A stretch of DNA of 64,000 nucleotides from Gnetum montanum (GCA_015680685.1 MNCI01000651.1:310001-374000), one strand, 5' to 3'. Positions 1,110 through 57,199 are shown, numbered from the stretch's first letter. Notes: generated from the sequence alone by a model not told the origin. Numbers and translations: made by a program.

Positions 1110-1126
1110 CCCTCCTTCTAGCGCCA
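1110..1126 (-). promoter_or_regulatory. Primer binding site (tRNA-Asn) of element A
   Basis: Minus strand TGGCGCTAGAAGGAGGG is complementary to the plant tRNA-Asn 3' end (CCCUCCUUCUAGCGCCA), 5 nt from the LTR end. Confidence 0.88.
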
Positions 1127-2906: not shown

Positions 2907-4926
2907 GTAAATGTTTGGCTTTACATGCATAGACCTTGCTTACTTAGTTAACCACAAGGTGTCAATCACCTTTGATCATTAAGCATCTAATTCCTAAGTC
3001 ACAAGCTCCCATCATCCCTCTGATCAAACCCTCATACTTCACTATGTTATTTATGCATGGAAATGTAAGACAATAGGTGAAGGGTTGGATTTCACTAGAT
3101 GGAAATCTTATGATGGCAATGACATTGATCCCATGGGTAATTAAACTTTCATCAATGTGCATGACTACCTCATAACCCTTGGTCACTTGCCTAATGGTGT
3201 TAATGTGCTCATCAGGGAACTTAGGATCTATGGTTGCTCAATCATTAATATGTAATAACATGAGTTGTATGGCTATAGCTTGGCCTTTTTTTGAGGATTG
3301 AGAGATGCAATAAAGGTCAAACTCTATGGTTATGGCTTTTAATTGGGCTATGTGGCTACTTTTGTAGATGCTAATCCATATGGCTCTAAGCATGTTATCT
3401 TTGCAAATGATGTTGGCTTGGCTTCTTAAGAGGTAATGTCTCCACCTCTTCAATGAGAAGACTAGTGCTAGACAATACTTCACTTCTATGTATTGGGTCT
3501 CATGAGTAACTAATGCATGGCTAAGGTAGCGTATAGGTATCTCTACTTCATCCTCATGTTTTTGATAGAGTAGAGATGCAACAGATGTATTAGAGATAGT
3601 AAGGTAGATGTAAAATGATTTACCCTCTTGTAGAGGATAGACTATTTGTAGTTGTACCAACTCTTGCTTAATATTTTCAAAGGTCTCTTGGCATTGAGGC
3701 ATTCACACATAGGAAACCCCTTTCTTAAGCAAGTGTTCCATCAACTATAACTTATCCATAAGCCTAGCAATAAATCTACAAATAAACTATAATCTACCTT
3801 GTAATCCCCAAAGCCTCTTAAGGTTGGTAGGGGTTTCTAATTTGGATATGGCCTTAACTTTATCAAGATTTACAAGTATCCCTACTTTAGATACTACAAA
3901 GCTAAGAATCTTACCAATCCTGATACCAAAAATGCATTTCTTAGGATTGAGCCTAAGCTCATACTTGATGAGCTATTTAAGCATAATATCTAGGTCATTA
4001 GCATGATCATTGGTCATTTTGGACTTAACAACTATATCATCCACATAATTGTTGAGCAAACCTAGCATGTAATTACTAAATATATAGGTCATGGCCCATT
4101 GATAAGTTTCTTTTGCATTCTTAAGGCCAAAGGGCATCGTAGTATGGAAAAAGATACCCCAAGGGGTCTTGAAGATATAGCTAAGTTGGTGCTTTGGGTT
4201 GATCCTAATCTGGTTGTATCCCTAGAATCCATCCATAGAGGACAATAAGGCATGCTTGGTTGTAGAATAAGTTGATCAATATTAGGCAAAGGGAAGTCAT
4301 CCTTGATAATCAATTTATTTAGATGTTAGAAATCCATGCAAATATGGATACCACTATTTTGGATATTCATTCTACGTAGTCAACAACCCTAACGAAACCA
4401 TATTGGTAGAGCTTTGAGATCTCATCATGAACTACCAAGACCAATTTAGGTTGAATTTTATACACTTTTTGCTTAACTACCCTAATGATAGGTTCTAGTA
4501 TGATGTTGTGTTAGACTAAACATGGGTCTATACTTGGCATATCTTCATATGACTAGGCAAAGGTCTTAATATTGCCTTGTAGGACCTTGGTGATGTCTTG
4601 AGATTTTTGAGTTTCCAGTGAGAAACTTAGTTTAAGGGTTTGTTCCTTACCACTATGTGTTATGATAGGAACCTCAACTAGAAAGCCTTCATTTATGTTG
4701 CTCACCTCTAAGACAAGGGTTTTGACTAGGTATTCAAGCATTCTAAAGGTTTCTCTATCAAGGCTACGTGGTCAATCATATTCTTAAGCTAAAGATCTAG
4801 GAAATCAAGGTTAATATACTATTCTACATTGTTGTGAAGTCCACATATGCTCAAAGGTAAATTGATTTGCATCTAGGTACTCATACTTTAGTCCTACATG
4901 TCAACCACAAGCATATTAAGTGTCAC
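2907..4926 (-). pseudogene. pol: Degenerate pol: reverse transcriptase, RNase H and additional archaeal-type RNase H (Tat lineage)
   Basis: RT motifs: FA(W)SYEDMPSIDP, KDDFPLPNIDQL, MPFGLKNA, YVDDIVVKS, LNPKKCIFG. RH: PIRYLSHAL...YCLALVFSLKRWRHYLL. aRH: FPCINNIVKYEGLIRG...LGIRCLMIKGD. Many stops and frameshifts. Confidence 0.93.
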
Positions 4927-5269
4927 CTAAGTAAAGATGAACAAATAATGGTAAAATTCTCTAAAATTATTTAGATAAATGCTATTATAATTCAAGAAAT
5001 CTCATTAAGGTTATTGTTTATGCATAAATTTTGGATACATCAACACTCAAAAAAACTCATTTAGGAAGACTATTACCTAGAGTGCCTCTCATATGGGTAT
5101 GAAAACCTAGGAATATTCTCAACTAGAAAGGGTAATGTAGCATTCCAAAAGGTAAATCAAATTGGAAAATTGGAAAAATTTAACTTAAATAACTATCTTA
5201 AATTTTAAGGCTTGATGAGAAAATAGTAAAATAACTAGTAAATGTAAATTTTAAAATTCTCCCTAGTCT

Positions 5270-6035
5270 CCTATTACTACTGCTCACTACTACTACCTGC
5301 TACTTACTCTCATTCAAAATGAGAGTGACTCCTCTTCTTCAAACCCTCACCACATGGGGAAGAGAGGAAGGCAACACAAAGAGAGGAAGAGAGATGTTCT
5401 ATCTCTGATCGCTACTATTTCTTGCTACTATCACTCATCAAAGCTTCTCTTCATTGATCACTATCACTGCTACCACTACTTCTGCTGTTGTCACTACTAC
5501 CACTACTTCTGCTATTGTCACTACTACCACTACTGCCACTATTGCCACTACTTCCAACTATTATTATTTCCAGCATTTTTTGGCTCATGCTACCCACTAG
5601 TTGCTGGCTACTAGCTCACACCACCCACCATTGCCGCTATGCATGTCTTCATTCGCATTGCATGCCACCTACCACTTACTGACATTGCTTGCTACCTCTT
5701 GCCATTACACTTGTGCATTACTATTCATTACTATCTCATGTCAATATTTTCCATTGCCATTCATCACCATTGTTCATGCTACATGCCATCACTATTCATG
5801 CTCATTGGCATCCATTGTTGCTCACCACTCACAAGTGCTACCGCCATTGATGCCACCTACATCTACTGACATTGGAAGAGAGGGAGGCCTAGAGATCCTC
5901 TTTTTGCATTCTGTTGTCGTTGATCCTTTTATGAAAGCTCCCATTCGATGTCCTTAGTTGTCCATATTTGCCACTACCATGTCACCACTACCCTATGTTG
6001 CCACTACCTCATGTCTACCACTACCCCACATGTAG
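5270..6035. repeat. Low-complexity decayed trinucleotide-like (CAC/TAC/TGC) region inside the LTR; second copy at ~11340-12040
   Basis: Runs of cactactac/ccactgcc; these generate the spurious His/Cys/Tyr- and Leu/Pro-rich ORFs. Confidence 0.75.
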
Positions 6036-6054
6036 ACCTATTTTTATTTTTTTT

Positions 6055-6885
6055 TGAGTAGTCAATGTCACATTGCTACAACATGGGGCTAGTGTTATTA
6101 GGTAGAAATTGATTGGTATGTAGCCAAAGTAGTAATAAAAAGGAGGACAAAAAAATGGACAACATGATCATAATCATGGGCATCTAATTATGCCTTCCCA
6201 TGGGCTCTTTTAGAAATGGATACAGATGCAGAACCACCCACATGGCAAGGAAAACCTTGTCAAATAGAAGATCCCATGACTGGTAATTGTTATTTATAGC
6301 ATCAGAAATTCCTACAACTAGAGCCATCAAATTTATTATCACCAATGTTGTTAGAAAAATTAGTAGAGTAATCCACTTAAATAAATACAACTTTGCAAAT
6401 TCATCTTCATTGTCTACTGTAGGTTTGGCTATAATTATGAAATTGGTATCCACTATGCCTAAAACTTTCAACAAATCCTACACCACTATGAATAAGTGAG
6501 CTAAGACTCTAACAATGACCTAGAACTATTCATTCCTCTAGAATTTCAACATGGAAACCTTGCTCTAGTGCAACTTTATAATGGAAGTTGAGATGATTGC
6601 GAGAAACATGCATAGAAACTAGATGTTAGCAATTCCTATCAATGTGGGTGTTATGAATTTTCCAATGAGTAGGATCACAACCAGGTGTATGCAATAGGCT
6701 AGCAGAGGAATGGAGATAAAAGGCTAGATTGCTATGTTTATGTATGCCATGCATTGCAGGAGTTTAAGTTTGGAGAGGTTATTATTTTTGGTGTTTGTGC
6801 TAGATCCTAATACCTAGGAATACCATAGTGGGTAATGGTAGCTGATGAAGATCTCTATGGAGCCCAAAGCCCTGTGAAGGACTAT
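6055..6885 (-). pseudogene. CesA: Captured cellulose synthase (CesA) C-terminal fragment, copy 1 (QxxRW region to C-terminus)
   Basis: Translation VLHRALGSIEIF..PLWY..KLKLLQCMAYIN..PFISIPLLAYC..GKFITPTL..RNE*F*VI..LLKVLGIVDTNF..LYLFKWIT..SDAINNNYQSWDLLFDKVF..LHLYPFLK..QCDIDY. 831 nt, one frame, with in-frame stops. Confidence 0.95.
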
Positions 6886-8075
6886 TGAAAAGCCTTTTAT
6901 TGTATTCTTAGGTTGAATTTTATTCCCTCACTAAGCCTCACCTTTCAAACATTTCTTCAATTTCTACATGTTGAACATATTTGAAGTTGGAATAAGACCC
7001 CATCTACTATGTAACCAATCTTAATTTATGTTACTTTTATATTTTAATGAAAGCTTAAAGAAATAATAAAATATGAAAAAAAAACTTTGACTAATTAAAT
7101 TTAATGTTTGCTAGCAAGGAATTTTTCTACTTCTCCCTACTCAATTTAGGATATCAAACAACTGAAATTACAGAGAATTTCATGCAAGACTATATTGATG
7201 GATGACAATAATTTAAAGGTTGCATGATACCTCTCATTGAAAGCATGCCTATTCAAATCATGAAATTGTACCCTAGTGATTAGACTAATAAGTTATGGCC
7301 CTGTGCTTAGCATGGGTGATGTTGGCATCAACACTTAGCTCCCAAACATTAAATTNGCTTATCTTAGATCATAGCTAGCCACAAATTTCAAATTTTTTCT
7401 TAGGACTCTTTTTTATTTTGAATTTTGGAAAAATAGGTTTAAAAGGGAAATGGAGGGTAGGGTGAGGATTATTATTAGACCCCATCATACTCAAGAACTT
7501 ATTATACTATCAATGAAAATGATCCTCATTCTTTTTCTTTTGTCTCTCTTTTTTTTTTCTTTTTGAGGAAAATTTGCTTATGGTGTACTTCATTCTTAAG
7601 GCAGGAATTCCAACATGAGTCTAGCTAGTTAGCTTCACTACCAAAGAACATGATCCTTTTGGAAATTTTCCCATAATATAGTTCAGCCCTCCTATATGTG
7701 CCTTTAATTACAATCTAGATGACATCATAGTAGGTATTCTGGGTGGCTAAGGGTTCTTAAGTAGAGATGAACACACTTCACCCTATTGCTCACAAGATAG
7801 CCATGGATCATCACACTTGAAGGCTAGGGCTTATGAGATGAATCCCAAGCATTATGTCTAAAAGGGGAATCTAAAGTGGTGTCCTTTTGAGCTAATAAAT
7901 CAAGAACATAATTTTCTTCTCTAAGAATATGTTCAATGGATATGTCATCAAAATCTAGCCCACCTTCTAATGTTTTAATGGTTAGGATCTCAATTATATC
8001 TTTTTCCTCCACTGATGGTGGTAGATCATCCAAAAGGAATTTTTTTTCATCATGTTTATGATAAGACAATATATC

Positions 8076-10221
8076 TTAATATATTTCTTTACATTTACTA
8101 GAAGCAAAAGTATTTACTTTTGAAAATTCATTCTCATTGTCATTTATAACATGTTTTCCAAGCCCAACTTCAATAACTCCAATATAAAGATTAGTATTTT
8201 GATCTTCCAAAGATTGATTTTGTTGATCAAAATTTGTTACCACTTGTTTATAGAAAGGATTTCTTGGTATGACCATATATTTAGATTTTTCTTTAATAGG
8301 AATTAATAATTCTAAGAAATATAACCTAAGGAAGCCTCCAAACTTGGCTCCAAAAGTCCTAAATAAGAGCACACCTATAGTGGGTGACATATCAACTACT
8401 AAAATATCTATATAGCATGTAAAAGTAGGGTATTATTTAGGTAATAATTTTACTTCCTTTAATGAACCTACCATAGGTACATTAGATCCATCAGGTTGTA
8501 TCACACTTCTTACTTGTGGTAGCATCCATGCTCCTGATGTTTTACATACCTCAAGTGGCATGACACTAATAGTTGTGAAACAATCCATCAAAAAATTGTG
8601 AACATTCTAGACCAAAGTTTTCATGAAAGGAGGTTAATCTTTCTTTTTTGACATGGAACTGTTTTTGTTTTGTATTGATAATGCATTAGGACTTTTTGCA
8701 AAATGAACTTGCCTTTTGGTTGTTGGAGATTTTTCTTTATTAGTTTCATATGTATGAACTATCTTTTGAATCACATCTTTCATTTGATTAAAATGTAGAA
8801 GATCATACATTGAAATTTTGGCTTTAACTATTTTCAAATCCTCAACTAGATCATAAGTCTTATTTTCATCTTTGGCTTTTTGTTGAGCTGGAGGTCTCCT
8901 AACTATAGAAGGGGTGTTTGCTTTGGATGGTCTGGTTTGATTATTTGTGTTATTTTAACTAGGAGCTCTTCTATTTGGAGGAGTATATTATTTCTAATTT
9001 ATTGTTGTGTGGTGTTCATAATGTCAGTAAGCTTATGGTAGCAAGTGTTATGTGGGTTGGGATCACTTACCATAACTTGTTCCAATGAGGAAACTTCTTC
9101 ATTTTTGTTTCATGAGGTATGTTCAAGACCATATTTAGGGTTTTCTCATTTTGTTACCCTTGGGCATTGTCACCATATAATACTAAAAATTTAGAACAAG
9201 TTTTTTCAAAATGTTTCCTAGTGTTACGAAGAAGACAATAATCATCATTAGTTAATGTGCTCAATTTTTTGGATTGTATAGGAATGTTATTGTTATTTTG
9301 CTTCAATTCAACTACTTCATTGGAAATCTTTTGAAGTGAAGTTAATATTTGTGTCATTTGGTTTTTTTTTTTGACAAGTGGATGCATTAGGATTAGATAT
9401 TCCATTTGGATTTATGATGGATTGGATAAAGGCTTTGGATTGATTGTCACTTAAACTAGTATTTGGTGGTAAAAATGAAGAGGACATGAGGCCTTGAAAA
9501 TAGTTGTTTGTAGATTGAGCCATTTGAAGGGGAGTGGGAGTTTGGAATAAAGTATTATTCATTGAAAAAACTTGTTGTGGTAAAGGGGTAAACTACATAG
9601 GATTTCTAACATTCATCATCAATAATTGAGTTTGAATGCTATTCATCAAGGTAATTTATTCCAACTTAATAACTCCAGCCATTACTTCTTGTATTTCCAT
9701 TATGTTGGGATCAAAGTTAATGGCATAGGGAAAGAATGGGTCAATGATAGAGAGGTAAATATTGAGGATACCATCAGGTTGCAAATGCATTTCATTTAGT
9801 ACATAAGCAAGTTGATGAAGGAATCTTAAGTTGTAATCACAGACATTTTTCCTAGTGTTTTTATTAGGGTTTTAAAATTGCTTGATGCTAAGGAAAGGCT
9901 AGTAAACTTATTGAATTAAAGTAGGAACTTATTTTTAAACTCTTTCCATCAGTTGATAGAGGCATTATGGAGCATAAAAAACCATTGGATGGCTTTGCTC
10001 CTGAAAGTTGTCACAAATACCCTACATGCTATATCATTTTGGACAATGTTATGGATGCCTAATAAGCTTTCAAAACATTATATATGTTGGCAGGCATCAC
10101 TAGCAAGGGTTGTGGGATCCAAGAATAAATTTATGTTTTGAAGTGATTTTTGAATATTGTGATAGTTGGTGAAGTTAAAAAGGTTGCTCACCAAGGGGGT
10201 TAGGGGTTGATTAGTTTCCAT
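8076..10221 (-). pseudogene. gag: Degenerate gag + aspartic protease of the CesA-carrying element
   Basis: Retrotrans_gag-like DIACRVFVTTFRSKAIQWF..ASIN*WKEF. Cys/His knuckle remnant at ~9190-9240. Retropepsin-like LMDCFTTISVMPLEVCK...ILVVDMSPTIGVLL. Confidence 0.8.
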
Positions 10222-11062
10222 CCTAGTTTGGGTTATTTTAGGGATAGAACTTGGAAATCATGAAGCTCATTCTTTTCTTAAAGTGAAATGACAAGTAGGG
10301 GCAAGAGTAGAAGCTATTTGTTGAGATTTATTATAGGACTATTCACTCATAAAATAAAAAATAATAGGAAATGTAAAATGTTAATAAACTATAAAATTAA
10401 AGAAAACAGAAAAATATTTAAATATTATTACTTTTTTAAAAAAAAATACTAAAATTGCTATATATAAACCTTGAAAGAAAAACAAAAAATGAAAAAGTTT
10501 TAGAAAAGTAAATTTAAAATTGGATAACATAATTAATGAAAATCACTTTACCAAAGTTAGAACTAAGGTAAGGACAACCAAAATTAGAACTAGGAAAAGA
10601 AGGTTTAGGATTCTGGAAATAAAACAAAAATAGAGCAATAAAACTAAAAATAGATTATCATTAACTAGAACTAATATTAGAGAAAGGCTAATAAAGGTTT
10701 GAGTAACTAAAACTAGAAAATAAAAGTTTTTAAGAACCAAAAAATAGAAATTTTTAAGTAGCAGAAACTAAATTTTAGAAATAGTAACTGGAAAATAAAT
10801 GACTATCATCAAGATAGGAAACAAAAATGGATAATAAAGGTTTAAGGTAACTAAAAAAAACTAAATAGGAAATTAAAAGTTCAAAATAACTAAAATAGAA
10901 AAAAAAATATTTATAAATGTTAAAGTAGATGGCCATAAACAGAAACTAAAAATAGATAATTAAGAATGGAAAAATGAAATTTTCAAAAAATGGAACCACA
11001 AACCTTTTAGAAATAGAAAAAGCTAATATTTCATAAAATGAAAAACAAAGGATAAAAAATAG

Positions 11063-11079
11063 CCCTCCTTCTAGTGCCA
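11063..11079 (-). promoter_or_regulatory. PBS (tRNA-Asn, one transition)
   Basis: TGGCACTAGAAGGAGGG on the minus strand, next to the LTR. Confidence 0.88.
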
Positions 11080-11085
11080 AAAAGG

Positions 11086-13343
11086 TGTTGATGTATACAT
11101 TTTGGACACATAGTTACCTAAAAAACTCATTTAGGGAGACTATTACCTAGGGTGCCTCCCGTATGGGTATGGAAACCTAAGAATAGTCTCAACTAGAAAG
11201 GGCAATGTAGCATTCCAAAAGGTAAATTGAACTCAAAATTGGAAAAATTTAAATCAAATAAGTATCTTAAATTTTAAGCTTGACAAAAAAAGTAGTAAAA
11301 TAACTATTAAATGTAACTATTAAAATTCTCCCAAGTCTCTTACTACCATCATTCACTATTGCTACTTGATGCCTACTCTCATTCAAAATGAGAGTGACTC
11401 CTGTTCTTCAAACCCTTAGGTCATGGGAAAGAGAGGAAGATAATGAATGGAGAGGGAGAGAGATGTGTTATCTCTTATGTCTTCTACTGCCTACCACTGC
11501 CACTTGCCAAAACCACTCTGCACTAATCACTACTACTATTGTCATTACTGCTGCTGCTGTCACTATTTCTACTACTGCCACTATTGCCATTGCTTCTAGT
11601 TGTTATCACTATCACCATTCATTGGCTCATGCTACCTATTGGCTTTTGACCATTTTCTCGTGTCACCCACCACCATTTTTGCATGCATCTTTGTTAGCAT
11701 TTCACATCACCTACCACTTGTCGACACTACCTACTACCTGTTGGTGTTGCACTCACTTATCGTCATTCATTGCTATCATGTGCTCTCATTTACTATAGGT
11801 GTCGATGGTTGCCATTTATGTTGTGTACCACTACTATTCATACTTGTTGGCACCTCCTATCACTCACCACTCATAGATGCTACCACCATCAATTTTGCCT
11901 GTAGCTATTGACACTAAAAAAGAGGGAGGACTGAAGATCCCCTTTCTACATTTTGCTACTGCCAATCATTTTATAGTAACTCCTAGCTAATGTTCTTAGT
12001 TACCCACATCTACCACCACCACATTTCCACTACCCCATGTGTAGTCCTATTTTTATTTTATTTTTCAGTAGTTTATGTTACACTGCTATAGAATGGGACT
12101 AACGTTCTTAGGAAGGAAGGGATCGATACATAGCCAGAGCAATGAAAAAAGGGAGGCCAGAAAAATGGATCACATGAACACAATTGTGGCATCTGATTAT
12201 GTATTCACATGAGCCCTTTTAGGAATGGATACAGATGCAAAACCACCTACATAGTAAAGAAAACCTTGCTAAACAATAAACCCCATGACTAGTAATTGTT
12301 ATTTGTAGTAGTAGAAATGCCTACAATGAGAGCCACTAGATTTATTATCATCAGTGTCTTCAACAGAATCACCGAAGTAGTCCACTTGAACAAATACAAC
12401 TTTACAAATTCATCTTCATCATCTACTGTAGGTTTGGCTATAACCATGAAATTGGTATCCACTATGCCTAAAACTTTTAGTAGGCCTTGTACCATTGTGA
12501 ATAAGTGAGATGAGACTTTGGTGATGACCTAGAATTGCTTATTCCTCCAGAATTCTAACATGGAAACCCTACTCCAGTGTAGCTTTAGAATGGATGTTGA
12601 GATGATTGTGAAAAACATGCATAGAAACTAGATATTGGTGATTCCTATCAATCTAGATGTTATGAATTTGTTGGTGAGTAGGCACATGGATAGGAGTGTG
12701 TAGTAGGCCAACAAAGGAATGGAGGTAAAAGGATAGACTACTGTGCTTATGTATGCCATGTGTTGCAGGAGTTTTAGTTTGGAGCAGTTGTTGTTTTCAA
12801 TGTTTGTGTTGGATCCTAGTCCCTAGGAATACCATAGTGAGAAATGATGGCTTATGAAGATCCCAATGGATCCCAAAGCCCAACGAAGAACTATTGAAGA
12901 TTCTTTCATTATATTCTCCAATTGAATTTTATTCCTTCATTGATCCTCATCTTTCAAACATTTTTTTAATGTCTACATGTTTAACATATTTGAAGTTGGA
13001 ATAGGATTCCCTATGCTATGTAACCAATCTTACTTTATATTACTTTTCTATTTTACTAGAAGCTCAAAGAAACAAAAAAATTAAAACAAAACTTGTTTGG
13101 CTAATTGAAGTTAATGTTTGCTAGCAAGAAATTATTCTACTTATCCCTACTCAATTTAGGATATCAAACAAATTAAATTATGGAGAATTTCATGAAAAGA
13201 TTTGTTGATTAATGATAATAATTTAAAGGTTGCATGATACCTTTTATTGAAAGAACCCCTATTCAAATCATCAAACCATACCCTAGTGCTTATACCAATA
13301 AGTCATAGCCTTGTGTCTAGCATGGGCAATGTTGGCATCAATA
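11086..13343 (-). repeat. 5' LTR of the CesA-carrying element
   Basis: Adjacent to the PBS; starts tgttgatg on the plus strand; direct repeat of 5015-7333. Confidence 0.93.
12065..12894 (-). pseudogene. CesA: Captured CesA C-terminal fragment, copy 2
   Basis: VLRWALGSIGIF...VQGLLKVLGIVDTNFMVIAK..LYLFKWTT..NNNY..LHLYPFLKGL..QCNINY*; retains the terminal TGA. Confidence 0.95.
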
Positions 13344-16300
13344 GTTATATATAGAGTTAAAAAAAGTAAACAGATTATAATAAGGGCTAAATAAAGGTCA
13401 AAAAAGGTCAAACAAAGGAAAGTATAAGACTACAAATGGTCAACATTGATCATATTTTTGCTAGTTTAAGACCTTAGTAGGACATAATACTAGTTTAAGG
13501 CCATAACAAGCCATAATGCTAGTTTAAGGTCATAGTGGGCCATGGTTACACAGTGTCAAACAGTGATTAGGGAAGGTCAAACTCCACCATCCAACACCAA
13601 TCAAAGACTTAATAAAGGTAAATAAGGCTATATTAAGGTAAAAAAAGGAAAATATAAATCTCTGTACTGGTCATAAGAAGGTCAACAAGGTTGACAATGT
13701 AACACAAGGCCAAAATCAAGTCAAAACATCATGAAATAAGGATAAATCAAGATAAATAGATTACATATGATGAAATTTGACTAATATAGATAAAAAATGA
13801 TCAACTTTTTCCAGTTTTAGGCCTTAGCAAGCCATGGTTTAAGGTTAGAAGGGTCATGGGTGAGTTTGGTCATCAATTAGTGCTATTTTTGGGCTATTTA
13901 AACTTAAAAATCAAACGTTTTGAGGCGTCCACATTGGGTTCCCCTATTTCCATACTATCCAACATGAAAGAAGTGATCCCTAGTATGAAAACAAATGATA
14001 GTATGTTTTGGGACATCCAAAGGTCCTAAATTGATGTTTTGGGGGCTTCTCAAGGCAACGTAGGGCTAGATCCATCAAAATTAGGCACTCTAAAGGCTGA
14101 TAAAGGCCAAAATATAGGTTCTAGAGCTTAATCTCCTTACTTCCACATTGAAAAGCATGGAAGGAAGGGAGCACAATGTACAAAACTAAGATCCAAGTAT
14201 AATCAAGGTCAAATAATGTTAAACTAGCATCAAGAACCCATATCTGGGAGTTGTACATTCCCTAGCCTCATTTTGAGGCCATTTGAGTCAACTTCTAGTT
14301 CTAGGATAAGTTGAAATTACTTTTCCACCTTCTTAAATGATGCATTTAGCATCCCTAACATGGAAGAATTAGAGGAAACTTGTTCCAAGCTTTTGGAATG
14401 GTTTGGGAGCACATTGACCAAGTTTTTAGACCCCTAGGTTTACATATCATGATTTCCAAAGTTTCTAGCTAATTTTGGTAACATTTGGAGGTCAATTAAG
14501 GGCATCTAAGGTTTTACACCCATATTTTAACACTAGGGGAGTTTCTCTAGCATGGAAGATTATGGAAAATGAGTTTTGAATGCCAAAATGAAGTCAAACA
14601 AGCATAATCTCAAGGCTATGAGATCCTAGGCTTCTTTGCCATAGATTTTTTATCTCCGAGAGTGTCAACACCTGTCACCAAATGTATAAAAGTAGCTTTT
14701 CCACCTTATTTTCATGTTGTCCAACATGGAAGGGACCTTCTCTAGTATGGATGAAATAAGAATCCTAGATCTAGACCATCTTGCAACATAATCAACTACG
14801 CATGTTAGCTCCTAGAGTTGTCAGGGTTAAGGGCTAAGGTCTTAGGTCAAACTTTGGTAGTTTTAGGTATTCCTAAGTGGTGTTTTTGCTTTTCCCCCTT
14901 TTTGATTCTAAGGTCAGAGTGTACAATGTGGATCTAATTGGTGACATCAAGGGGCATATATTTTTGGCCATTGGAGGTTAATTCTGCAAGATTTATGGGC
15001 TCTGGAAGATGCAAACATGGTCTTATGGTACATGAAAAGTTGTAGGGTATGTTCTTGAGGTGTCTAAGAGTTATTTTTGAATCCCCAAAAAGTTCCTCTT
15101 ACTTCCACATTGGCTAGCATGAAATATTTTGCTCCCAAGATGGAAGAACTAAGGAACCCTACTTTTTGCTATTTTTGTCACTTCTAGCCATGCATGTGGG
15201 TCTTCAAGATTACTAGTGTCAATCATTGATACCTAGGGTTAAAATGTGGGTATTTAAATCATTGTTAAATGGTTTTTAATGTTCTTATTTTTCTTCCATG
15301 CTAGGATTCTTATTTTCATCATGGAAGATTAAGGGAGCTAGCGTTTGGCTATCTATGATCAATTTTGGAGAGTTTGTAAGTTCTGTTATGTATAAATAGT
15401 GTCCCCCCCACCCAACAAGATTTCTAAGGTATCTAAAGGTCATCTTCATGTACCCCAAAGGTTTCCCATTTCTTTCATGCTAGAAAACATGGAATAGCTA
15501 ACTCCTAGCATGGAAGAGCTAAAGAACTATGCCTTTTTCTAGTTTTTATTAGTTTTGGATATGCATGTGTGTCCATAGGGTTGTTGGTGTTGATTGTCAA
15601 TGCCTAGGGTTAATATCTACAAATTTTGAGGGTTGTAAGAGTGTTTTTTGGCTTCCCCCACTCCATCAATTCTAGGTTTTAGATTATCACTATGGATAGG
15701 ATCCTCCTCATTGTGAAGAATCTAAGGGAGGCAAGTTTGGATAATATTAGTTACCTTTTGGAAGTCCAGTGGCCTTTCAAAAGAGTTGATTTTCTTCTAG
15801 AAGTTAGTTTTCATGGAAACTTCAATAGTTTTGGATTCCACCATTTCATCCACATTGGGACTAGGATGCTTAGTGTGAATGAGGTCCTCCATAGTGCTAA
15901 AGAATTGTAGGTGATTGGATTTTATTAAATTTTAACATTTTGGTGACTTCTAGAGAGGATGTTAAGGTTCCAGTGTAGGTACAAGGAAATTTGATGTTGT
16001 TTTCATGTATCTAGGACCCCACTAATCTTCCTAGCTACATCCACATTGTTTACATGTTGGGAACATGGAAGAGGTCTTCCCTAGTGTGGATGATCCAAGA
16101 ATGTCAGATCTAGGTTAGTTTGATAGCCAATCAACAATGCATATCAACCTCTAGGATTGTTGATGTTGATGGTTGATACTTGATGTCAAGATTCACCAAT
16201 TTAAAGGCTTCTAGGTGCCTCATGTAATCATTTCCCTTTCTTCTATTCTTGGAATGTTGGCCTTTGTATGGATGAGAGGAGGATCGTATTTTTATGCTAT

Positions 16301-27669: not shown

Positions 27670-27686
27670 CCCTCCTTCTAGTGCTA
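27670..27686 (-). promoter_or_regulatory. PBS (tRNA-Asn, decayed) of element B
   Basis: ccctccttctagtgcta on the plus strand. Confidence 0.85.
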
Positions 27687-27692
27687 GAAAAC

Positions 27693-29151
27693 TATTACAA
27701 TTGGAAAAATATATTTCTAGAAAATTGAGAGATCGAGCATAGTAGCCTCAACTCCAAATTTCCATGTCCTTAGGAAAATGAGATTTGAGATCCCCTGGAT
27801 GGTCTAGCAGATCACCTAGGAACTTACAAAATGCAACACTAGGGGTTCAGAAAATAAAATGGAAAAAATTGCAAATCTATAAAATTGAAAGCAAATGCAA
27901 ATCGCACAAAAAATGAAACTTAAATGCTTTATTTAAAATAATAAATAATAAGTTCTAGAAATTTATACAAGAAATTTTTATGATAAAGGAAAGGGTAGGT
28001 TCATTGGGGTAGGAGTTCAAATCTTGTTGAAGCTGATGTGATCTGCTCCATGATTTAGATGCTCAACTACTCCTAATGCTTTTGAACCTCCTCTACCACA
28101 ACTTCAAATATTCAACTTTGATCACTATTAGAGGGTGAGAAGAGTGGGAAATTTTGCTGCAAAATTTCTCCATGATGGGAGTTGGGAATCCCAAAATGTA
28201 GGGTTGAAACCAAAACTCCATAAGCGTTAGGGAGGTAACAAGGCCACATTGGTTCCATGCTAAGGGTTCCAAAACATTGTATTTTCAAAGTGTTGCAAGA
28301 GATCTTGGAGGCCAAAATTACTATGTGCTCAAAAATGCCAAAGTATGGAACTTGAAAAGGGTGTTGGAGCTTTGATTTTATAGGTTTTCGACCATGCTTT
28401 TTGCTACAAATGGGTTGATAGATTGGTTGAAAACTGCTACAAATTTCTACCTAGTATAAGTGAGATGGGTGCCAATATTTTTGGGGTTGGCATATATAGT
28501 AGGTGCTAAACTTCGATGGCCATTCTATTTAGTATAAATAGTAACAAGGGCACATCTTCTACTTTGGAGATAGATCTTTAACAATGAGCCTTCTACCATT
28601 CTTGTTGAAGTAGTTGGTCAACCTTGAACTCATTAGAATGTAAAAAATCTTACTCATGTTGCTTCCATGCTATGGGTATGTAGTTTCCATTATGGCGGTG
28701 GACCCTCCATGCTGGGGAGAAAGTTCCATGCTCAGGGGGAAAGGTTTCCATGTTTTGCATGTAGTCTCCATGTTTAGGATGAATTTTCTATGTTGAGGGT
28801 GAAATCCCCATCCCTCCACACTAGAGGTAGGTGAGATTTAACATCTACAAGTTTTTCTAGTGTAGAAAAGTGTATACCCCCCATAAAAACTATAAAATTG
28901 TCATTTTTAGCAACCCAAAAGGCATTTTTGATCCCTAAGCCCAAATAGATACTACGTGCCTCTTTTCACTTGGGGAATAAGGCTTTGACCACTTATGAGG
29001 TATTTTCTAGTTCCAAATGTGTGAAATATGTTAAATTGCCTCTAATGGATTACAATCTTCATATTTACAATGAAGTTTTACCTCGGCTTCCATGGGGTGA
29101 AGTCTACATGTTGAAAATTGGTTATAACATGTAAATTTTCATGGTGTTTCA
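27693..29151 (-). repeat. 5' LTR of element B (~1.46 kb)
   Basis: Starts TGAAACACCATGAAAA on the minus strand; reverse-complement homolog of 31063-32531. Confidence 0.87.
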
Positions 29152-29944
29152 ATATATTCCTCATTACTACAATCAAATACTTGATAAAGTGGGTTAAGGA
29201 TATTTCCCTAAGGAATACTCTATCCAAACAAGTCTATAAACTTATCCTAGATAACACTGTAGCCCATTTATGCTTATCCATGACCATAGTTACAAACAAT
29301 GAACCATAATTTAATAGCCAAGAAAAAATTATTTCTATAATGACCTAGGCATTAAGCATTCTTTCTCCTCACCTTATTAGCCTCAAGCCAATGGACACGT
29401 TGAAGTAAGCAACAAGGGCATCATCAACTTGCTCAAGAAAATGCTCAATAATAGCAAGCCTAAATGGCATGAGCAACTTGTCCATGCACTTTGGGCCTAT
29501 TTTACAACTTAAAATATGGCAACTAATGTAACAACTTATATATTTGTTTATGATTCTAAAGCTATTTTATCTCTTGAATTTCATGTACTATCACTTCAGG
29601 TGACACAAACTCACTCCATCAATAATGAACAAAGCAAGGAGTTGCAAATTACAGACCTAGACTTGGTGGAGGAGCAACATATGCAAGTGCTTACATAGGT
29701 TGAGCACTATCAAGAGAGGTAGAAATGGAAATACCACCATAACTTGACCAACTGTAAGATCAAGGAGGGTGACATGGTCCTCAAAGCCATATGTTAGCAT
29801 GTGGATAAACTCTTAGCCAACTAGAAAAGGCCCTTCCTTGTCACTAGATATTATTGTAATGGAGCATTTAGGATAGCTAACATGGATGGGAATGATTTGA
29901 ATAGTTTGGTTAATCTTTTTTATCTAAATTCATATTACATGTAG
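29152..29944 (+). pseudogene. int: Integrase core and C-terminus of element C
   Basis: IKYLIKWVK..TIVTNNEP, PQANGHVEVSNKGIINLLKKML, WHEQLVHALWAY, GDMVLK, KGPFLV; stop at 29942-29944. Confidence 0.9.
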
Positions 29945-30130: not shown

Positions 30131-31062
30131 CCCAGGTAGCTTGGTTTTATCATTTCATATGACCTGTATGCATTGTCATATTATAACATGTCTTATTTTC
30201 TTGGTTTTCTTATCCTCTTGGAGTTGTATTTGTAGGATGAAGCTTAGGACCATCGCAAGGATGCAACTTATTATAGTAGCAAGTCACTACGTGACCTTAA
30301 TTTGCATGGTTTAGTGAGTTTGTTCTACTATTTTAAGGGTGGTTTTACCATTTCCCTCCATCTAGCACCACTCCTTAAATCCAACCCCATAACCTTATCA
30401 TGACCTTCCATACCTTGGGAAGTAATGTTGACCTATGTTCATCACTCATGCACTATAGCCATATGATATATCTACCTAGTGCTCTATCTTCAAGTCCACT
30501 TGAATGTAACATAGCTCACTTAGTGGGAAATCATTATGCCCATCAAACATAACACATCTCATTCTATGGGATAACCACCAAGTCCATTGAGTGTAACACA
30601 ACTCACTCAATAGGAAAACCATGTCAAACTGGCCCTAGCAATTAGACCAAATGAAGGCTTCATCCCACATAAGAAAACAAAAGAGGGAAAGAAAATTTCT
30701 AAGAAGATAAATGTACAATTAAGCCTCAAATCCCAATGACCAAAGAAATCTTGGAGCAAAGTGATTGGATCCTCATATGCATTTGTCAAGTGACCAACAC
30801 TTCAAAACATGTTAGTTTCATGCTATAGCCATGAATGTCAACAATGGAATGCATTGTTAACCTTTATAACCATCTTCCTAATGACCATTACCATGATATC
30901 ATTATAGCCTTCTCCCATTATTACAAGCACTCTTTGGCATGGTTTGACATAATTGGATCAAGCACAAAGAATAAGCATTGATGGTGGACCTGTTATGATA
31001 TTTTTTATTCTTTGTTGATGCCTCTCAAGTCAATCCTCTAGATAACACCAAATAAGGACCAT

Positions 31063-39589: not shown

Positions 39590-40391
39590 CCTATGGTCTA
39601 AGTGAATACAACTTGTTCCCACCACCACATAGGTGGATCTTTAATGACACAACTTGTTCCCAAAAGAAGTTTTTGAAGCATCTACATTCGCAAAAATATT
39701 TTGCATATGAGAGTGCACATGAAGTGGCACTCTTGTACAACTTAGGTGGGATATTAGGCATATTAGAAGGTAGTGCAGGTAATTCATCAATCTCTACAAC
39801 TTGGTTAAAATCCCATTTCATCTTAGGCACTGTAAACAACATAATACAAAAAAAAATTAGACACATAAAATTAGTTAAAAATTGAAAAAGAAAAAATAAC
39901 AAGAAACTACATAACCATAGAAACTAAGTGAAAATAAAAAACATTTAAATAACAAAGGAAAAATAAATTAGAACTCACACAAACATAATGAGCTATTTTT
40001 TGCAACTGGTTGATTATATCTTTAGCCACACCTCACATAAACTTAGTCTTATAAGGTGTATCTACTCATGCTTTCATGTGGAATGTCGAGGTGGAAGTAG
40101 AAACCTAAGGCTCTAGAGCTATAATCAGCATAATAAGCAATTACCAATGGTGACCAAGGTTAAACATAAAACAACAAAGAAAAATAAAAAATAATAATAC
40201 AACATATGAAACTAAAAGTTACAAGTACCTAAAAGATCCTCTAGTGTTATAGTAGAAGGTTCACCTAGGTGTCAATCCCTAAACAAGGCATCAAAGCTAT
40301 CCATTGAAGGATGGGATAGACTCTCATTCTCATGATGCTATAACACGTCCTCTTCTAAATACCTTCATTCTGCCTCTATTACTATTGCTAT
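39590..40391 (-). pseudogene. 3' exons of the antisense accessory gene of element E
   Basis: EIDELPALPSNMPNIPPKLYKSATSCALSYAK..WEQVVSLK aligns with B EIGSLPKFPFNVYSVPLKLYETATNLAMSCEK..WEQVMALR; the acceptor is at the equivalent position. Confidence 0.75.
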
Positions 40392-41516
40392 TGAGGATCA
40401 TAGAAGTTAGAAGGAGGGATGAAAAAGTTTCTCACATTAAAATTTTTATCTAGAAAGAGCTCAACCAATTTTAACATGATTTCCTACCTTAGGTAGTCCA
40501 TACTAGGAGGGTAGATTGCTTACATACCTCTAGACATTTTTTCTCTTAAAAGTGGCTTGAAGGGTATCACACTCTATAAAAGCTCTAAGCTCCTCTCCTA
40601 AGTGATTCAACATCATGAATCCACTTAACCCTACAAGATTCTAACAAGCTTGGATAGTGGTTTTCAAGATCCCAATACCTTTACAAGTTAAGCTTTGCTT
40701 TAGAGTGTTGTGATGCTACATCAACCCTTAATCCCATAGAATCCCAAAAATATCAAGGATGATGCCTTCTAGCAAGAATAATAGTAATCCTATAGGGTAA
40801 TAAAATAAAAATAAGAATTACATGGAAAGGATGAAACTAATTTGTTGGTCCTTGTACTTTGATATACAGCACAACTAATTACTTAAAAAAGTACAAAAGA
40901 TAGTACAATGTACTACCCAAAAATAATAGAATAATATGCACAATGATTGCTTGATGTTGACACTTGCTTGCACACAAATTTGCACATTCTCTAAGAGATT
41001 GAAGTCTTATTATATCCTTCACATTTCTAAAATCACCTCAGAATTCATGCAATAGCTATATAACAGCTAAGGGAGATGTCTTCTTCAAGATTGGGACATC
41101 TGATTAATCAGACTTGAATTCTAGATAGATGTCTCAAATCCAGGGGAGATGTCTTCTCCATCTAGTAGACGTCTACTATTCTTACAATATGCCTTCAATG
41201 CTTCTTCTATTCTTCAGTTAAGATGTCTTCTGCTTCTTGTAGACATCTTCACAACTTTTGGATTTTTCTTCCCAAGGCTTCCTTTCATTGATTTGGTTCA
41301 TCCATGATCTTGGGAACTTCTTCATTTTGCTATAGTCTTCACCTTTATCCTTGCTCACACTTTAGTTCTTGATTCTTCACTTTGACATGTATTTGTAGAT
41401 GTCATTTCTTTGGCTTTCCTTGTAGCCTCCATGTTCTTGTCCTATAAACACAATAACCACACAAACATCCTTGTTCTCCATTTCTCTTAAGGTTTTCACA
41501 TACCAAAAGGTCAAAA
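40392..41516 (-). repeat. 3' LTR of F
   Basis: tgaggatca...taccaaaaggtcaa; adjacent to the decayed PPT region. Confidence 0.87.
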
Positions 41517-49658: not shown

Positions 49659-49881
49659 CATATTGTGATGTATACATGTGATGTTTAGCATTAAAGAATG
49701 GATTCCCAAACTTCAAAATCCATAGATTTGAAGAATCCTTGCATCCTTACTTTCGAATAGGTGAAGTCGAATCCATCTAACATTGGTGGCTTTATGTACA
49801 AGGTTCCCTCCATTTTTCACTCTTAAGGATGATGAAGAACTGATTAATAAAGCACCAAGAGTACCAAGCTCTGATGCTAGT

Positions 49882-51002
49882 TAAGGATCGTAGAACTTAG
49901 AAGGGGGGATGAGTAAGTTCCCTAAATTAAAATTTCCAAACACAAAGAACATAAGCAATTTTAACATGGTTTCCCAACTTGGGTAGTTCACACTCAGAGC
50001 ATAGATCACTTGCACATCTCTAGACTTTGTTTCTCTTAAAAGTGGTTTTAAGGATACCATACCTTGTACAAGCTCTAAGCTTTGCTCAAAAGTGATTTAA
50101 TGCCATGAATCCACTCAACCCTACAAGGTTCTAAAAAGCTTATAAATTGGTTTCTAGGATCCCACAACCTTTACAACTTGAGATCTGCTTTAGAGCATTG
50201 TGGTACTACACCAACACTCAATCCTGTAGGATTCCAACAAGCTCAAGGACGATGCCTTCTAGCAAGAAGCACATCAACCCTATAGGAAAACAAAAGAGAA
50301 ACAAGAATTACAAGAAATGAAAGCAACTAATTTTCTTGTGCTTGTATTTTGAGGTATAGAAAAACTGATCATTTACAATAGTATAAAAGATAGTACAATG
50401 AAGTACCAAAAATTAATAGAATAATATACACAATGATTTCTTGATGTTGACACTTTCTTGCAAAAAAAACTTTCACATTCACCAAGAGAATGAAGTCTTC
50501 TTATAGCCTTGATGTTTTTTAAAATCACCTGAAAATTTATGCAATGGCTAGGGAAAACATCTTGATCGAGATTGGGATGTCTCAGTGATTAGACCTAAAT
50601 TCTAGGTAGGCATATCATATCTAGGGAAGATGTCTTCTAAGACACATCCACATGTAGATGTCTTCTCCATGTAGTAGATGTATAGTATTTTTATAAGACA
50701 TCTTGTATGCTTTATTTGTTCTTTAGTCAAGATGTCTTCACAGATGTTAAACTTTGGTTCTCCAAATTTCCTTTCATTGATTTTCCTCATTCATGATGTT
50801 AGGAACTTCTCCATTTTGCTGTAGTCTTCATCTTTGTCCTTACTCTCACATTAGTTCTTGAGTGTTCACTTTGACATCTCTTTGTAGATGTCATTTCTTT
50901 GGCTTTCCTTATGGTCTTCATGTTCTTCTATAAACACAAAAATCATACAAAAATCCTCATTCTTCATTTTCCTCAAGGTTTTGACATACCAAAAGGTCAA
51001 CA
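49882..51002 (-). repeat. 5' LTR of F
   Basis: Direct repeat of 40392-41516; adjacent PBS agctctgatgcta. Confidence 0.88.
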
Positions 51003-55537: not shown

Positions 55538-56645
55538 TGTTGAAATTTTGGTATGTAAAAACTTTAAGAAAAATGAAGAACATAGAATGTTGTGGAATGT
55601 GATGTTTTGTAGGGCTGAAGTAAGAAATGACATTTACAAAGAGATCTCAAAGTGGAGACTACAAGGACTTAAGGGAGCATAGACAAGTATGAAGAATACA
55701 AATGAAATGAAGATGCTCCAATTATAGAGAGGAAGTTAAATCAACAAGATGAAGGTTGAAGAACCAAAGTTTAAAAGCTAAGAAGACATCTCCTAGAAGC
55801 AGAAGATGTCTTTGCTGAAGTTGAACACATGTAGAGAATACATCTTCCAAAAACAAGAGATGTCTCCTTTCAAGATAAGGCATCTCCATAGAGATGTCTC
55901 CAAAAAGACATTCTACTATTAGAAGAGATGTCTCTTTAGAATGGAAGTCAATTTTAGAGAGATGTCCTAATCTCAAAGGAGACATCTGCACTATCCATTA
56001 GAAAACTATTGCATGAATTTTATGGTGATATTAGAAACTCCAACATAATAAGAAGACTTCATTCTCTTGGAAAATTTGCTAGCATTGAATATCAAATAGT
56101 AATCATTATGTACTATATTCTATTATACTTGTATTATAACATCATCTATTTGGATTGTTGTGAAAATATACTTTATTGACCAAGGAATTTTTAAATTGAG
56201 TTACATTATATCCTTGCAATTCTTTTTCTTTTCTTGCTACCTTGAGGTGTTGGTGTGCTTCTTGCAAGAAGGAAACTTGATCAAGCTTATTTGGATCCTA
56301 TGAGATTGAGTGTTTATACAATGTCATAACACTTCAAAGAAAAGCTTAATTTGTAAAGGTTATGGGATCCTTGAAACTATATTCTAAGTGCATTGGAACC
56401 ATGCAAGGTTGAGTGGTTTCTTACCAATGAAAAACTTTGGAGTGGAGCTTAGAGCTTGTAAAGGGTGAGGCATCCTTCAAACCACATTTTAGAAAAACAA
56501 AGTTCAAACATGTGCAAAAAATATACCCTCCAAGTGCAGACTATCCAAGTTGGGGAACCATGTCAAATTTGGGTGTGGTTTTTATGGAAATTTAATTTTT
56601 CTTTAGGGAACTTATTCATCCCCCTTTCTAAGTTCTTGATCCTCA
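55538..56645 (+). repeat. 5' LTR of H
   Basis: tgttgaaattttggtatg...gatcctca. Confidence 0.9.
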
Positions 56646-57199
56646 AGTGGTATTGGAGCCTGGTCATCTCTCATAGATAAAGCAACACAACCATAAAAGT
56701 AGCAATCTACATTATGTATAACTTGATAAGGAGAATTATATGGTTTATTAATTGATATTTTCAACTCCCATATCAAATCTGTAAAGGTAAATCCTTCAAT
56801 TATTTCTTTAAATTTAGGAATAGAAAAGACTATGACTATAGATTAATCAAACTTATGATAATCTAGATGATAATGGAAGATCAAATAATGAATTTTCTTT
56901 TGATGAAAGGCATGGTCTATTCTACCATGAAGTTATTTCTTTTCAAAGCTTATGTGTTAATATGAAAAATGTTTTATAGATTAAGGATATGAAAATTACA
57001 TCTCTTAATGATCAATTTTCTTATTTTAAGAAGTAAAAATCATATATTAAGGCTAAATTTCAAAGACTAACCAATGTGATTGAGTAGATGAGTAAGAACT
57101 CTTCAAAGAAAAAAAAAGACCAAAAGCAAAAAGATGGATGTCTAGGAGATTCTCAAGAAGAAAATCAATCTAGATTTGATAAAAAGTCAAATCCTAGAA

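Follow-up and report, generated by a model that had tools for sequence, protein, structure and literature searches.

A CesA fragment of apparently spliced origin within both LTRs of an ancient, non-autonomous retrotransposon of Gnetum montanum

How did a piece of cellulose synthase (CesA) come to lie twice, in the same orientation, within a single repeat-bounded unit of the Gnetum montanum genome? The unit was located at positions 5015-13343 of the window, i.e., the whole stretch of 64,000 nucleotides that was analyzed. With a probability of roughly 0.8, it represents an ancient non-autonomous LTR element on the minus strand, nested in a Ty3/gypsy element, with a spliced two-exon CesA passenger in each LTR. 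As such, it cleanly illustrates an already known process, the capture of gene fragments by retrotransposons, and not a new kind of element.

The unit displayed the anatomy of a minus-strand LTR retrotransposon of 8,329 bp, with the following features:

5010-5014, unstranded: left copy of the target-site duplication, GTTAT, read directly and the same as 13344-13348.
5015-7333, minus strand: 3' LTR, 2,319 bp, aligned end to end with 11086-13343 (the element's sense being the minus strand).
5464-5556, unstranded: 27-nt tandem repeat of 3.4 copies (TRF), in the low-complexity part of the LTR that is C-rich on the plus strand, roughly 5260-6040.
7334-7343, minus strand: polypurine-tract-like run GGGAGCTAAG (sense strand) adjoining the 3' LTR, with 8 purines out of 10, short, interrupted and weak alone.
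7334-11085, minus strand: AT-rich internal region, 3,752 bp, with no gag, RT or integrase recognisable by Pfam.
7827-8987, minus strand: decayed sense-strand reading frame, with 4 stops over 300 codons and a weak RVT_3 (RNase H-like) match at its end.
11063-11079, minus strand: primer binding site, complementary at 16 of 17 bases to the tRNA-Asn(GTT) 3' end plus CCA, 6 nt past the 5' LTR.
11086-13343, minus strand: 5' LTR, 2,258 bp, aligned with 5015-7333.
13344-13348, unstranded: right copy of the target-site duplication, GTTAT, read directly.

The LTRs started with TGTTGATG (today TGTTTATG in the 5015-7333 copy) and finished with CATCAACA (today CATCAATA in the 11086-13343 copy); in sense orientation, the 3' LTR showed TGTTGATG at its start and CATAAACA at its present end. 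The inverted ends and perfect target-site duplication described in the first-pass annotation were both recovered, as TG..CA ends that include an inverted terminus of 8 bp (TGTTGATG...CATCAACA) and as GTTAT on both sides (5/5). The duplication was within the size of 4-6 bp given in the definition of LTR retrotransposons, and its chance at fixed boundaries, computed from the base composition of this AT-rich DNA, was about 0.0015. The same annotation implied near-identical LTRs, whereas the pair was old and diverged, with 77-80% identity (about 80% in BLAST blocks and 76.8% in global alignment, K2P 0.29) and CesA copies bearing 10 and 8 premature stops. Divergence between the LTRs was highest in the segment holding the 27-nt tandem repeat (K2P 0.46), a site at which the 11086-13343 copy had 27 nt fewer.

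The primer binding site claimed earlier was likewise found, reading from 11079 to 11063, with 0 chance matches to its pattern in 100 shuffles, and the motif belonged to tRNA-Asn in 15 of 15 fetched loci (ARAGORN). Two further tRNA-Asn sites, with the same T-rich spacer of 5-6 nt, occurred in the window. A literature search for the primer-binding-site string returned no matching paper. Primer binding sites for tRNA-Asn are found in 12% of elements in Athila and in 15% of those in TatII (Neumann et al. 2019), and their use here is compatible with the Tat/Athila (OTA) clade of Ty3/gypsy but not diagnostic of it; the interior contained no RT or INT usable for phylogenetic placement in this clade.

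As the first-pass annotation had it, the element was non-autonomous: a Pfam scan of every open piece within 7334-11085 gave no match at threshold to gag, protease, RT, RNase H or integrase, and the element is defective. The reading frame at 7827-8987 was significantly stop-poor (4 stops against a null minimum of 7 and mean of 12 in 300 shuffles), and the RVT_3 match at 7827-8075 (E 0.14) was under the Pfam threshold. Gag (zinc-knuckle-like), protease and aRH motifs picked out by eye in the interior were dropped for want of Pfam support. No similarity was detected between the interior and the remainder of the window (tblastx, blastn), and an Rfam search of 4500-14000 yielded no RNA family. The whole unit was nested in the internal region of another, older Ty3/gypsy element, identified by its replication domains:

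3241-4221, minus strand: reverse transcriptase and RNase H domains of that Ty3/gypsy element (Pfam RVT_1, E 6.6e-07, 3976-4221; RT_RNaseH_2, E 1.5e-18, 3241-3702).

Each LTR harbored one copy of the CesA sequence, in the element's sense orientation and about 450 nt from the LTR 5' end:

6039-6054, minus strand: A-rich tract of 16 nt, immediately 3' of the CesA stop position, occurring in both LTRs.
6055-6882, minus strand: CesA fragment of the 3' LTR, from the V of VLRW to the former stop (now TCA), in one frame with 10 TAG stops.
12065-12891, minus strand: CesA fragment of the 5' LTR, interrupted by 8 premature stops and, near 12187, by one frameshift; its TGA at 12065-12067 is the original stop.

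Both copies, of about 828 bp each and extending from VLRW to the stop as had been noticed earlier, were matched by tblastn to residues 791-1050 of P0006 (Citrus CesA4, 1,051 aa), over 6882 to 6061 in the 3' LTR (E 1.6e-66) and over 12891 to 12071, with a frameshift at 12187, in the 5' LTR (E 5e-74). Reading frames were read through with X at breaks. Coverage was restricted to residues 791-1051, from the V of QVLRW, without the zinc-finger N-terminus, the full set of catalytic motifs (D, DxD, TED and QxxRW) or a complete open frame, and the homology is that of the C-terminal membrane region, i.e., of a fragment and not of a gene. No CesA homology was obtained upstream of VLRW by relaxed tblastn or by frameshift-tolerant alignment against shuffles. 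A TED motif and FKGSAPINLS matches seen there by eye scored no better than shuffles and were rejected.

A 96-aa open piece (6184-6474) matched solved CesA structures (E 4e-31) and CslF6 at just 1e-09, while solved CesA structures of different classes scored alike (100-110 bits). The homolog search, run with the Citrus CesA4 C-terminus, gave angiosperm CesA4-type proteins only, and the protein identity of the piece was about 52-56% to CesA4 proteins, CesA4-type full-length sequences being the sole class compared. The secondary-wall class named in the first-pass annotation is a tentative assignment. For the A-rich tract following the stop position, three origins are conceivable: a site of template switching, the beginning of the 3'UTR, or what is left of a poly(A) tail. 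Judged from the LTR sequence itself, no recognisable 3'UTR lay between the stop and the tract.

Intron positions within the homologous region were derived from CesA/Csl proteins of angiosperms rather than from the donor gene itself. The one at P0006 residue 858/859 was inferred from about nine independent proteins of different plants: in five ORF-called fragments, the CesA homology set in at exactly this point, preceded by unrelated residues of which the last was Q (an acceptor CAG read in frame), and four mis-annotated proteins fused distant exons at the same residue. Both LTR copies ran uninterrupted across this position. Another intron, at residue 790/791, was seen via P0002 and P0160 and coincided with the exact start of the LTR CesA piece. 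The piece corresponded to the last two coding exons with the intron absent, and its first base was that of the penultimate exon. As the two exons are joined without an intron and the piece begins at an exon start, it evidently derives, as judged from sequence, from spliced RNA. The maize bk-5 paper did not give a CesA exon map.

Being sense-oriented and present in both LTRs, the CesA piece lay in the LTR template and was copied by reverse transcription to both LTRs. The earlier statement that the fragment was part of the LTR at transposition is consequently upheld, both LTRs belonging to a structurally supported LTR retrotransposon. Its position in the LTR was probably within U3. The CesA segment had diverged between the LTRs like the other LTR segments (K2P 0.27 vs 0.17-0.46). 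Much of the damage was common to the two copies: four stops occurred at the same codon as the same TAG, and among 57 columns invariant in 123 CesA/Csl proteins, six identical derived residues were found in both, including a two-nucleotide Gly-to-Ile change. Derived states were associated between copies (Fisher p 0.006), and transversions at conserved columns amounted to 11 shared vs 7 and 5 private. The four TAG stops and the radical substitutions at invariant CesA positions, shared by both copies, make it probable that decay of the piece, as non-coding sequence, had begun before this insertion. The joint decay hints at, without proving, an earlier history in the LTR lineage; today the piece is a dead passenger without coding capacity.

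The shared stops were mostly of the C-to-T type, which can arise independently at methylated sites, and LTR-LTR gene conversion could also produce shared changes. At columns conserved to 95%, some of the changes common to both copies may reflect true differences of the donor lineage. A blastn search of the LTRs against the remainder of the window revealed neither a further copy nor a solo LTR, nor any relative free of CesA.

Four other accounts of the duplicated CesA sequence were weighed against this one. The alternative that the first-pass annotation had set against its own reading, a segmental (tandem) duplication of a 2.3-kb block with a CesA pseudogene in which the target-site duplication, primer binding site and termini were coincidental, is scarcely credible. 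Repeats just 77-80% identical and an interior without recognisable retrotransposon genes would suit it, but it is strongly disfavoured by four independent features placed exactly at the repeat edges (the TG..CA ends with the inverted 8-mer, the 5/5 duplication at about 0.0015, the 16/17 primer binding site with 0 expected, and the purine tract, itself weak), and the unit interrupts another retrotransposon. The TG..CA ends and 5-bp duplication, together with the tRNA-Asn primer binding site and, more weakly, the purine tract at the inner repeat edges, thus support an LTR retrotransposon and not a segmental duplication. Capture from genomic DNA, in which the donor CesA would lack the 858/859 intron and the piece would be one long exon at its end, is very improbable. 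The intron positions were indeed inferred from other plants and not from the donor gene, but the 858/859 boundary recurred in many independent proteins of various plants, and the piece starts at a second inferred exon boundary, where the preceding triplet is ATA in both copies; in the absence of an AG acceptor there, the piece carries no remnant of an intron.

The two remaining accounts concern when and how the spliced piece entered the LTR. By the mechanics of retroviral replication, one round of reverse transcription places a U3 insert in both LTRs, which would be sufficient had CesA joined the cDNA in the same round of replication from which this insertion arose, making it founder and sole carrier, with no family of CesA-bearing LTRs. 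The lack of a further copy within the window agrees with such a one-off capture, which is nevertheless unlikely: a fresh mRNA-derived piece should be intact, while both copies carry the four TAG stops, the Gly-to-Ile change and further radical substitutions at invariant CesA positions. The possibility of parallel deamination or of LTR-LTR conversion takes some force, though not all, from this argument of shared decay. Rather less plausible still is an origin at the DNA level, in which a LINE-made, 5'-truncated processed CesA pseudogene entered a progenitor LTR and was later doubled by retrotransposition. The piece is intronless and directly followed by the 16-nt A-rich tract in both copies, which speaks for this account, but the tract abuts the stop codon without a recognisable 3'UTR, and a 5' end at an exon start has a chance of about 3% under random truncation (estimated from about 13 junctions, +/-3 nt, and a 3.2-kb mRNA). 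In addition, short direct repeats beside the piece were not noticed by reading.

For the preferred reading, a spliced CesA passenger held in the LTRs of an old element, capture may have occurred when reverse transcriptase switched templates to a CesA transcript packaged alongside; alternatively, the RNA that was copied may have been a chimera of element and CesA joined by splicing. The latter would account for the exon boundary at the start of the piece. Once acquired, the piece would have resided in the U3 of an LTR lineage, decaying as non-coding sequence prior to the integration of this copy. This boundary suggests a role for splicing, and not just for random template switching, in shaping what gets captured. 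A wider and tentative proposal, possible but on the doubtful side, is that the genome holds an LTR lineage whose U3 repeatedly acquires spliced host mRNA segments, with entry junctions produced by the splicing of element-host chimeric transcripts, and that 5015-13343 is a complete exemplar with target-site duplication and primer binding site. If so, passengers in U3 would pass through complete rounds of retrotransposition and last over long periods.

Gene fragments in LTR retrotransposons have been surveyed in several plants. The available parts of these sources report 425 intact maize elements with gene fragments, arising from at least 189 captures (PMC2774510), gene-fragment capture by LTR retrotransposons in rice and sorghum (PMC3726574), and about 400,000 captured fragments per genome in gymnosperm giga-genomes (PMC13477047). 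As far as those parts go, the captures resemble the present one in being non-functional old host exon fragments inside LTR retrotransposons, duplicated by the retrotransposition machinery. They are counted per element there, and within-LTR captures are not singled out, whereas the fragment described here occupies both LTRs as a spliced two-exon unit starting at an exon boundary. The earlier remark that host-gene capture is usually internal was fair, but there is ample documentation that LTR elements capture genes. Bs1 of maize is reportedly a low-copy non-autonomous LTR retrotransposon with spliced host gene fragments, which are said to lie in its internal region within an expressed chimeric ORF. 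Both elements are non-autonomous carriers of spliced host fragments, internal and expressed in Bs1 but within the LTR and dead in 5015-13343.

Foreign sequence within LTRs has been described for chimeric LTRs formed by abnormal template switching, in a BARE-1 subgroup with Wis-2 in its LTR, leading to the BARE-2 promoter class, and in long Veju TRIMs (PMC13317346). There too, foreign sequence enters the LTR during reverse transcription and is then inherited by both LTRs, but the foreign part is another retrotransposon or of unknown source, and not spliced host mRNA as here. In metazoans, LTR-mediated retroposition copies host mRNAs through template switching by the reverse transcriptase of LTR retrotransposons, which yields intronless copies in LTR-element sequence (Tan et al. 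2016, PMC5131818). In general outline, the likeness to the present case is the intronless host mRNA copy embedded in LTR-element sequence, and the difference is the metazoan host.

An LTR-borne passenger is doubled at each insertion and would persist as solo LTRs, and should hence scatter exons more efficiently than an internal passenger. Epigenetic conflict from captured fragments has been described in maize (bioRxiv 10.1101/777037) and gymnosperms (PMC13477047). Such conflict would concern young copies only, and the 5015-13343 copy is now too diverged; given its protein identity of about 52-56% to the compared CesA4 proteins, it would be a poor present-day siRNA source. In annotation, LTR-borne CesA pieces can be mistaken for CesA genes or gene fragments, and protein collections contain many truncated or mis-joined CesA models.

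Two direct repeats, 5015-7333 and 11086-13343, were delimited by repeat finding and BLAST and aligned end to end (76.8% identity, K2P 0.29, 393 transitions to 130 transversions in a global alignment). On the plus strand the repeats start with TGTTGATG (present-day form at 5015-7333, TGTTTATG) and end with CATCAACA (present-day form at 11086-13343, CATCAATA), displaying the TG..CA pattern with an 8-bp inverted terminus. The bases directly outside both ends were identical:

5010-5014 and 13344-13348: flanking pentamer GTTAT

From base composition, the chance of this match at fixed boundaries was estimated at about 0.0015. Repeat edges, termini and flanks showed the element coordinates of the first-pass annotation, 5015-13343, to be exact. 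Segmental duplication as the source of the repeats cannot explain four independent landmarks falling exactly at the repeat edges. The LTR segment holding a 27-nt tandem repeat (3.4 units, 5464-5556, in a C-rich low-complexity part) was the most diverged of the LTR (K2P 0.46), and 27 nt were missing at the matching place of 11086-13343.

Inside the 11086 edge, the minus strand reads from the LTR end through CCTTTT into TGGCACTAGAAGGAGGG. A search pattern combining bases of the window itself with the universal T-loop matched 32 metagenome loci, used solely for tRNA identification, and at each of the 15 loci examined ARAGORN called a tRNA-Asn(GTT) gene whose end coincided exactly with the match. 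Against the complement of the tRNA-Asn(GTT) 3' end with its CCA, the window's 17-mer was identical at 16 of 17 bases and differed by one G-to-A change at a CpG. This motif occurred four times in the window, always on the minus strand, with no chance match in 100 shuffles of the window, and at three of the four sites an LTR end was likewise followed by a T-rich spacer of 5-6 nt and then by the primer binding site. The further matches were:

1110-1126, minus strand: 0 mismatches, LTR end and 5-6 nt T-rich spacer
27670-27686, minus strand: 2 mismatches, LTR end and 5-6 nt T-rich spacer
30354-30370, minus strand: 2 mismatches

Several minus-strand LTR elements of the window seem to use tRNA-Asn. 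The primer binding site layout puts the sense strand of the element on the minus strand, with 11086-13343 as the 5' LTR and 5015-7333 as the 3' LTR; a purine-rich run adjoining the 3' LTR (GGGAGCTAAG) is weak evidence by itself. No gag, protease, RT or integrase had Pfam support in the interior (7334-11085). One sense-strand frame held 4 stops in 300 codons (shuffle minimum 7, mean 12) and ended in a match to the RNase H-like RVT_3 at E 0.14 only. The element is therefore non-autonomous and decayed. Primer binding sites for tRNA-Asn are found in 12% of Athila and 15% of TatII elements (Neumann et al. 2019); the site is compatible with both and does not place the element.

Residues 791-1050 of the full-length Citrus CesA4 protein P0006 (1,051 aa, used for residue numbering) aligned by tblastn at two places:

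6882 to 6061, minus strand: CesA match in the 3' LTR, E 1.6e-66
12891 to 12071, minus strand: CesA match in the 5' LTR, E 5e-74, one frameshift at 12187

Both the CesA piece and, by its primer binding site, the element lie on the minus strand, in agreement with the sense orientation first proposed. Termini, GTTAT flanks, primer binding site and the lack of Pfam genes likewise bore out the initial description of a CesA fragment in both LTRs of a non-autonomous LTR element. The longest open stretch (6184-6474, minus strand) matched solved CesA structures at E 4e-31, against only 1e-09 for CslF6. Homology began at the V of the VLRW motif; over the 450 nt upstream, relaxed tblastn and frameshift-tolerant protein-DNA alignment did no better than on shuffled DNA, and CesA residues picked out there by eye were rejected on the same scores. 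The original TGA stop was kept in the 5' LTR copy (12065-12067) and is now TCA in the 3' LTR copy, a 16-nt A-rich tract directly following the stop position in both. With 10 premature stops in the 5015-7333 copy and 8 in the 11086-13343 copy, the piece is dead. Sixteen of these 18 stops were TAG and transitions outnumbered transversions 3:1 between the LTRs, as deamination of methylated cytosines would produce (CAG to TAG, TGG to TAG). The copies were 52-56% identical to full-length proteins, in a comparison set of CesA4-type only. Past the PLWY motif, at the place of a short GYGG loop in the compared proteins, both copies hold an insertion of about 12 codons that keeps the frame (~6780-6816 and ~12789-12825, minus strand); this may represent a loop specific to the donor or a change that arose early in the LTR lineage.

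The exon map was drawn from imperfect plant CesA/Csl proteins of a representative search, not from the donor gene. In five ORF-called fragments (P0005, P0008, P0016, P0018, P0028), homology started at residue 859, and the unrelated residues before it ended in Q, as an in-frame CAG acceptor would leave them, which indicates a phase-0 intron at P0006 858/859; four mis-joined gene models (P0004, P0009, P0021, P0023) had distant exons spliced onto residue 859. A second phase-0 intron, between Q790 and V791, is indicated by P0002, which jumps from ...RLHQ directly to the last exon, and by P0160, where an upstream false acceptor puts the VLRW exon out of frame. Both LTR copies crossed 858/859 in one frame with no break, so the intron there had been removed, and the start of the piece coincided to the base with that of the penultimate exon. 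On this map, the piece equals the two final coding exons as joined in a spliced transcript. The preceding triplet was ATA in both copies, neither a Q codon nor an AG acceptor. By our own estimate, only about 3% of breakpoints placed at random would lie 3 nt or less from an exon junction, which points to splicing as the maker of the entry junction; for example, a chimeric element-CesA transcript could have been spliced and later copied by reverse transcriptase. Exon skips, frame errors or tandem fusions affected the public models P0002 (Vicia faba), P0159 (Tetracentron) and P0160 (Macleaya), as well as P0004, P0009, P0021 and P0023, showing how easily CesA C-terminal exons are mis-annotated.

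During LTR replication, U3 is copied from the RNA 3' end into both LTRs. The CesA piece, at about 20-55% of LTR length, likely lies in U3. Its divergence between LTRs (K2P 0.27) was within the range of other LTR segments (0.17-0.46), which fits presence in both LTRs from integration on. Four stops occupied the same codons, as the same TAG, in both copies, most stops being of the C-to-T type that recurs at methylated sites. Of the derived residues at 57 alignment columns that do not vary among 123 CesA/Csl proteins, six were identical in both copies, among them a stop in place of the tryptophan of the QFWVIGG motif and a switch from glycine to isoleucine needing two base changes; derived states of the two copies were associated (Fisher p 0.006). 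At columns at least 95% conserved, the copies shared 11 transversions and had 7 and 5 of their own. LTR-LTR gene conversion could imitate such shared ancestry, and some shared changes may be true features of the donor lineage. Decay of the piece before insertion is nevertheless the reading we hold probable, at roughly two chances in three, since a piece newly copied from a working mRNA should have been intact when the LTRs were made. If so, the CesA-bearing LTR or its source would be much older than this copy, which favors a mobile family without demonstrating it. From an LTR-LTR K of about 0.29, the insertion would be roughly 11 million years old at an assumed 1.3e-8 substitutions/site/year, or roughly 66 million at 2.2e-9, a value in frequent use for conifers.

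Many accounts document how LTR retrotransposons capture gene fragments, and the element is a clean, complete example. Published work describes 425 capturing elements that go back to at least 189 captures in maize (PMC2774510), capture in rice and sorghum (PMC3726574), about 400,000 fragments captured in each gymnosperm genome (PMC13477047) and LTR-mediated retroposition of host mRNA in animals (PMC5131818); abnormal template switching put foreign sequence into the LTRs of BARE-2 and Veju (PMC13317346). Notable in this element are a two-exon spliced piece that starts at an exon boundary, its place inside the LTR and its signs of pre-insertion decay.

The element interrupts a further Ty3/gypsy element that runs on the same strand and holds two Pfam domains:

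3976-4221, minus strand: RVT_1
3241-3702, minus strand: RT_RNaseH_2

Directly after this RNase H domain, an open stretch of 91 aa (2965-3237, minus strand) had no Pfam match at E 0.01; its INNIVKYEGL resembles TNNxAEYEAL by eye, making it a candidate archaeal-type second RNase H, which would render the interrupted element Tat-type (RT-RH-aRH order). LTRs and interior of the CesA-bearing element showed no similarity elsewhere in the window. Other long repeat pairs, 74-80% identical, were:

55546-56646 and 60732-61818: repeat pair
40386-41514 and 49875-51000: repeat pair
27768-29153 and 32455-31061: inverted pair

These are probably LTRs of further old elements, and the window is a nest of decayed retrotransposons.
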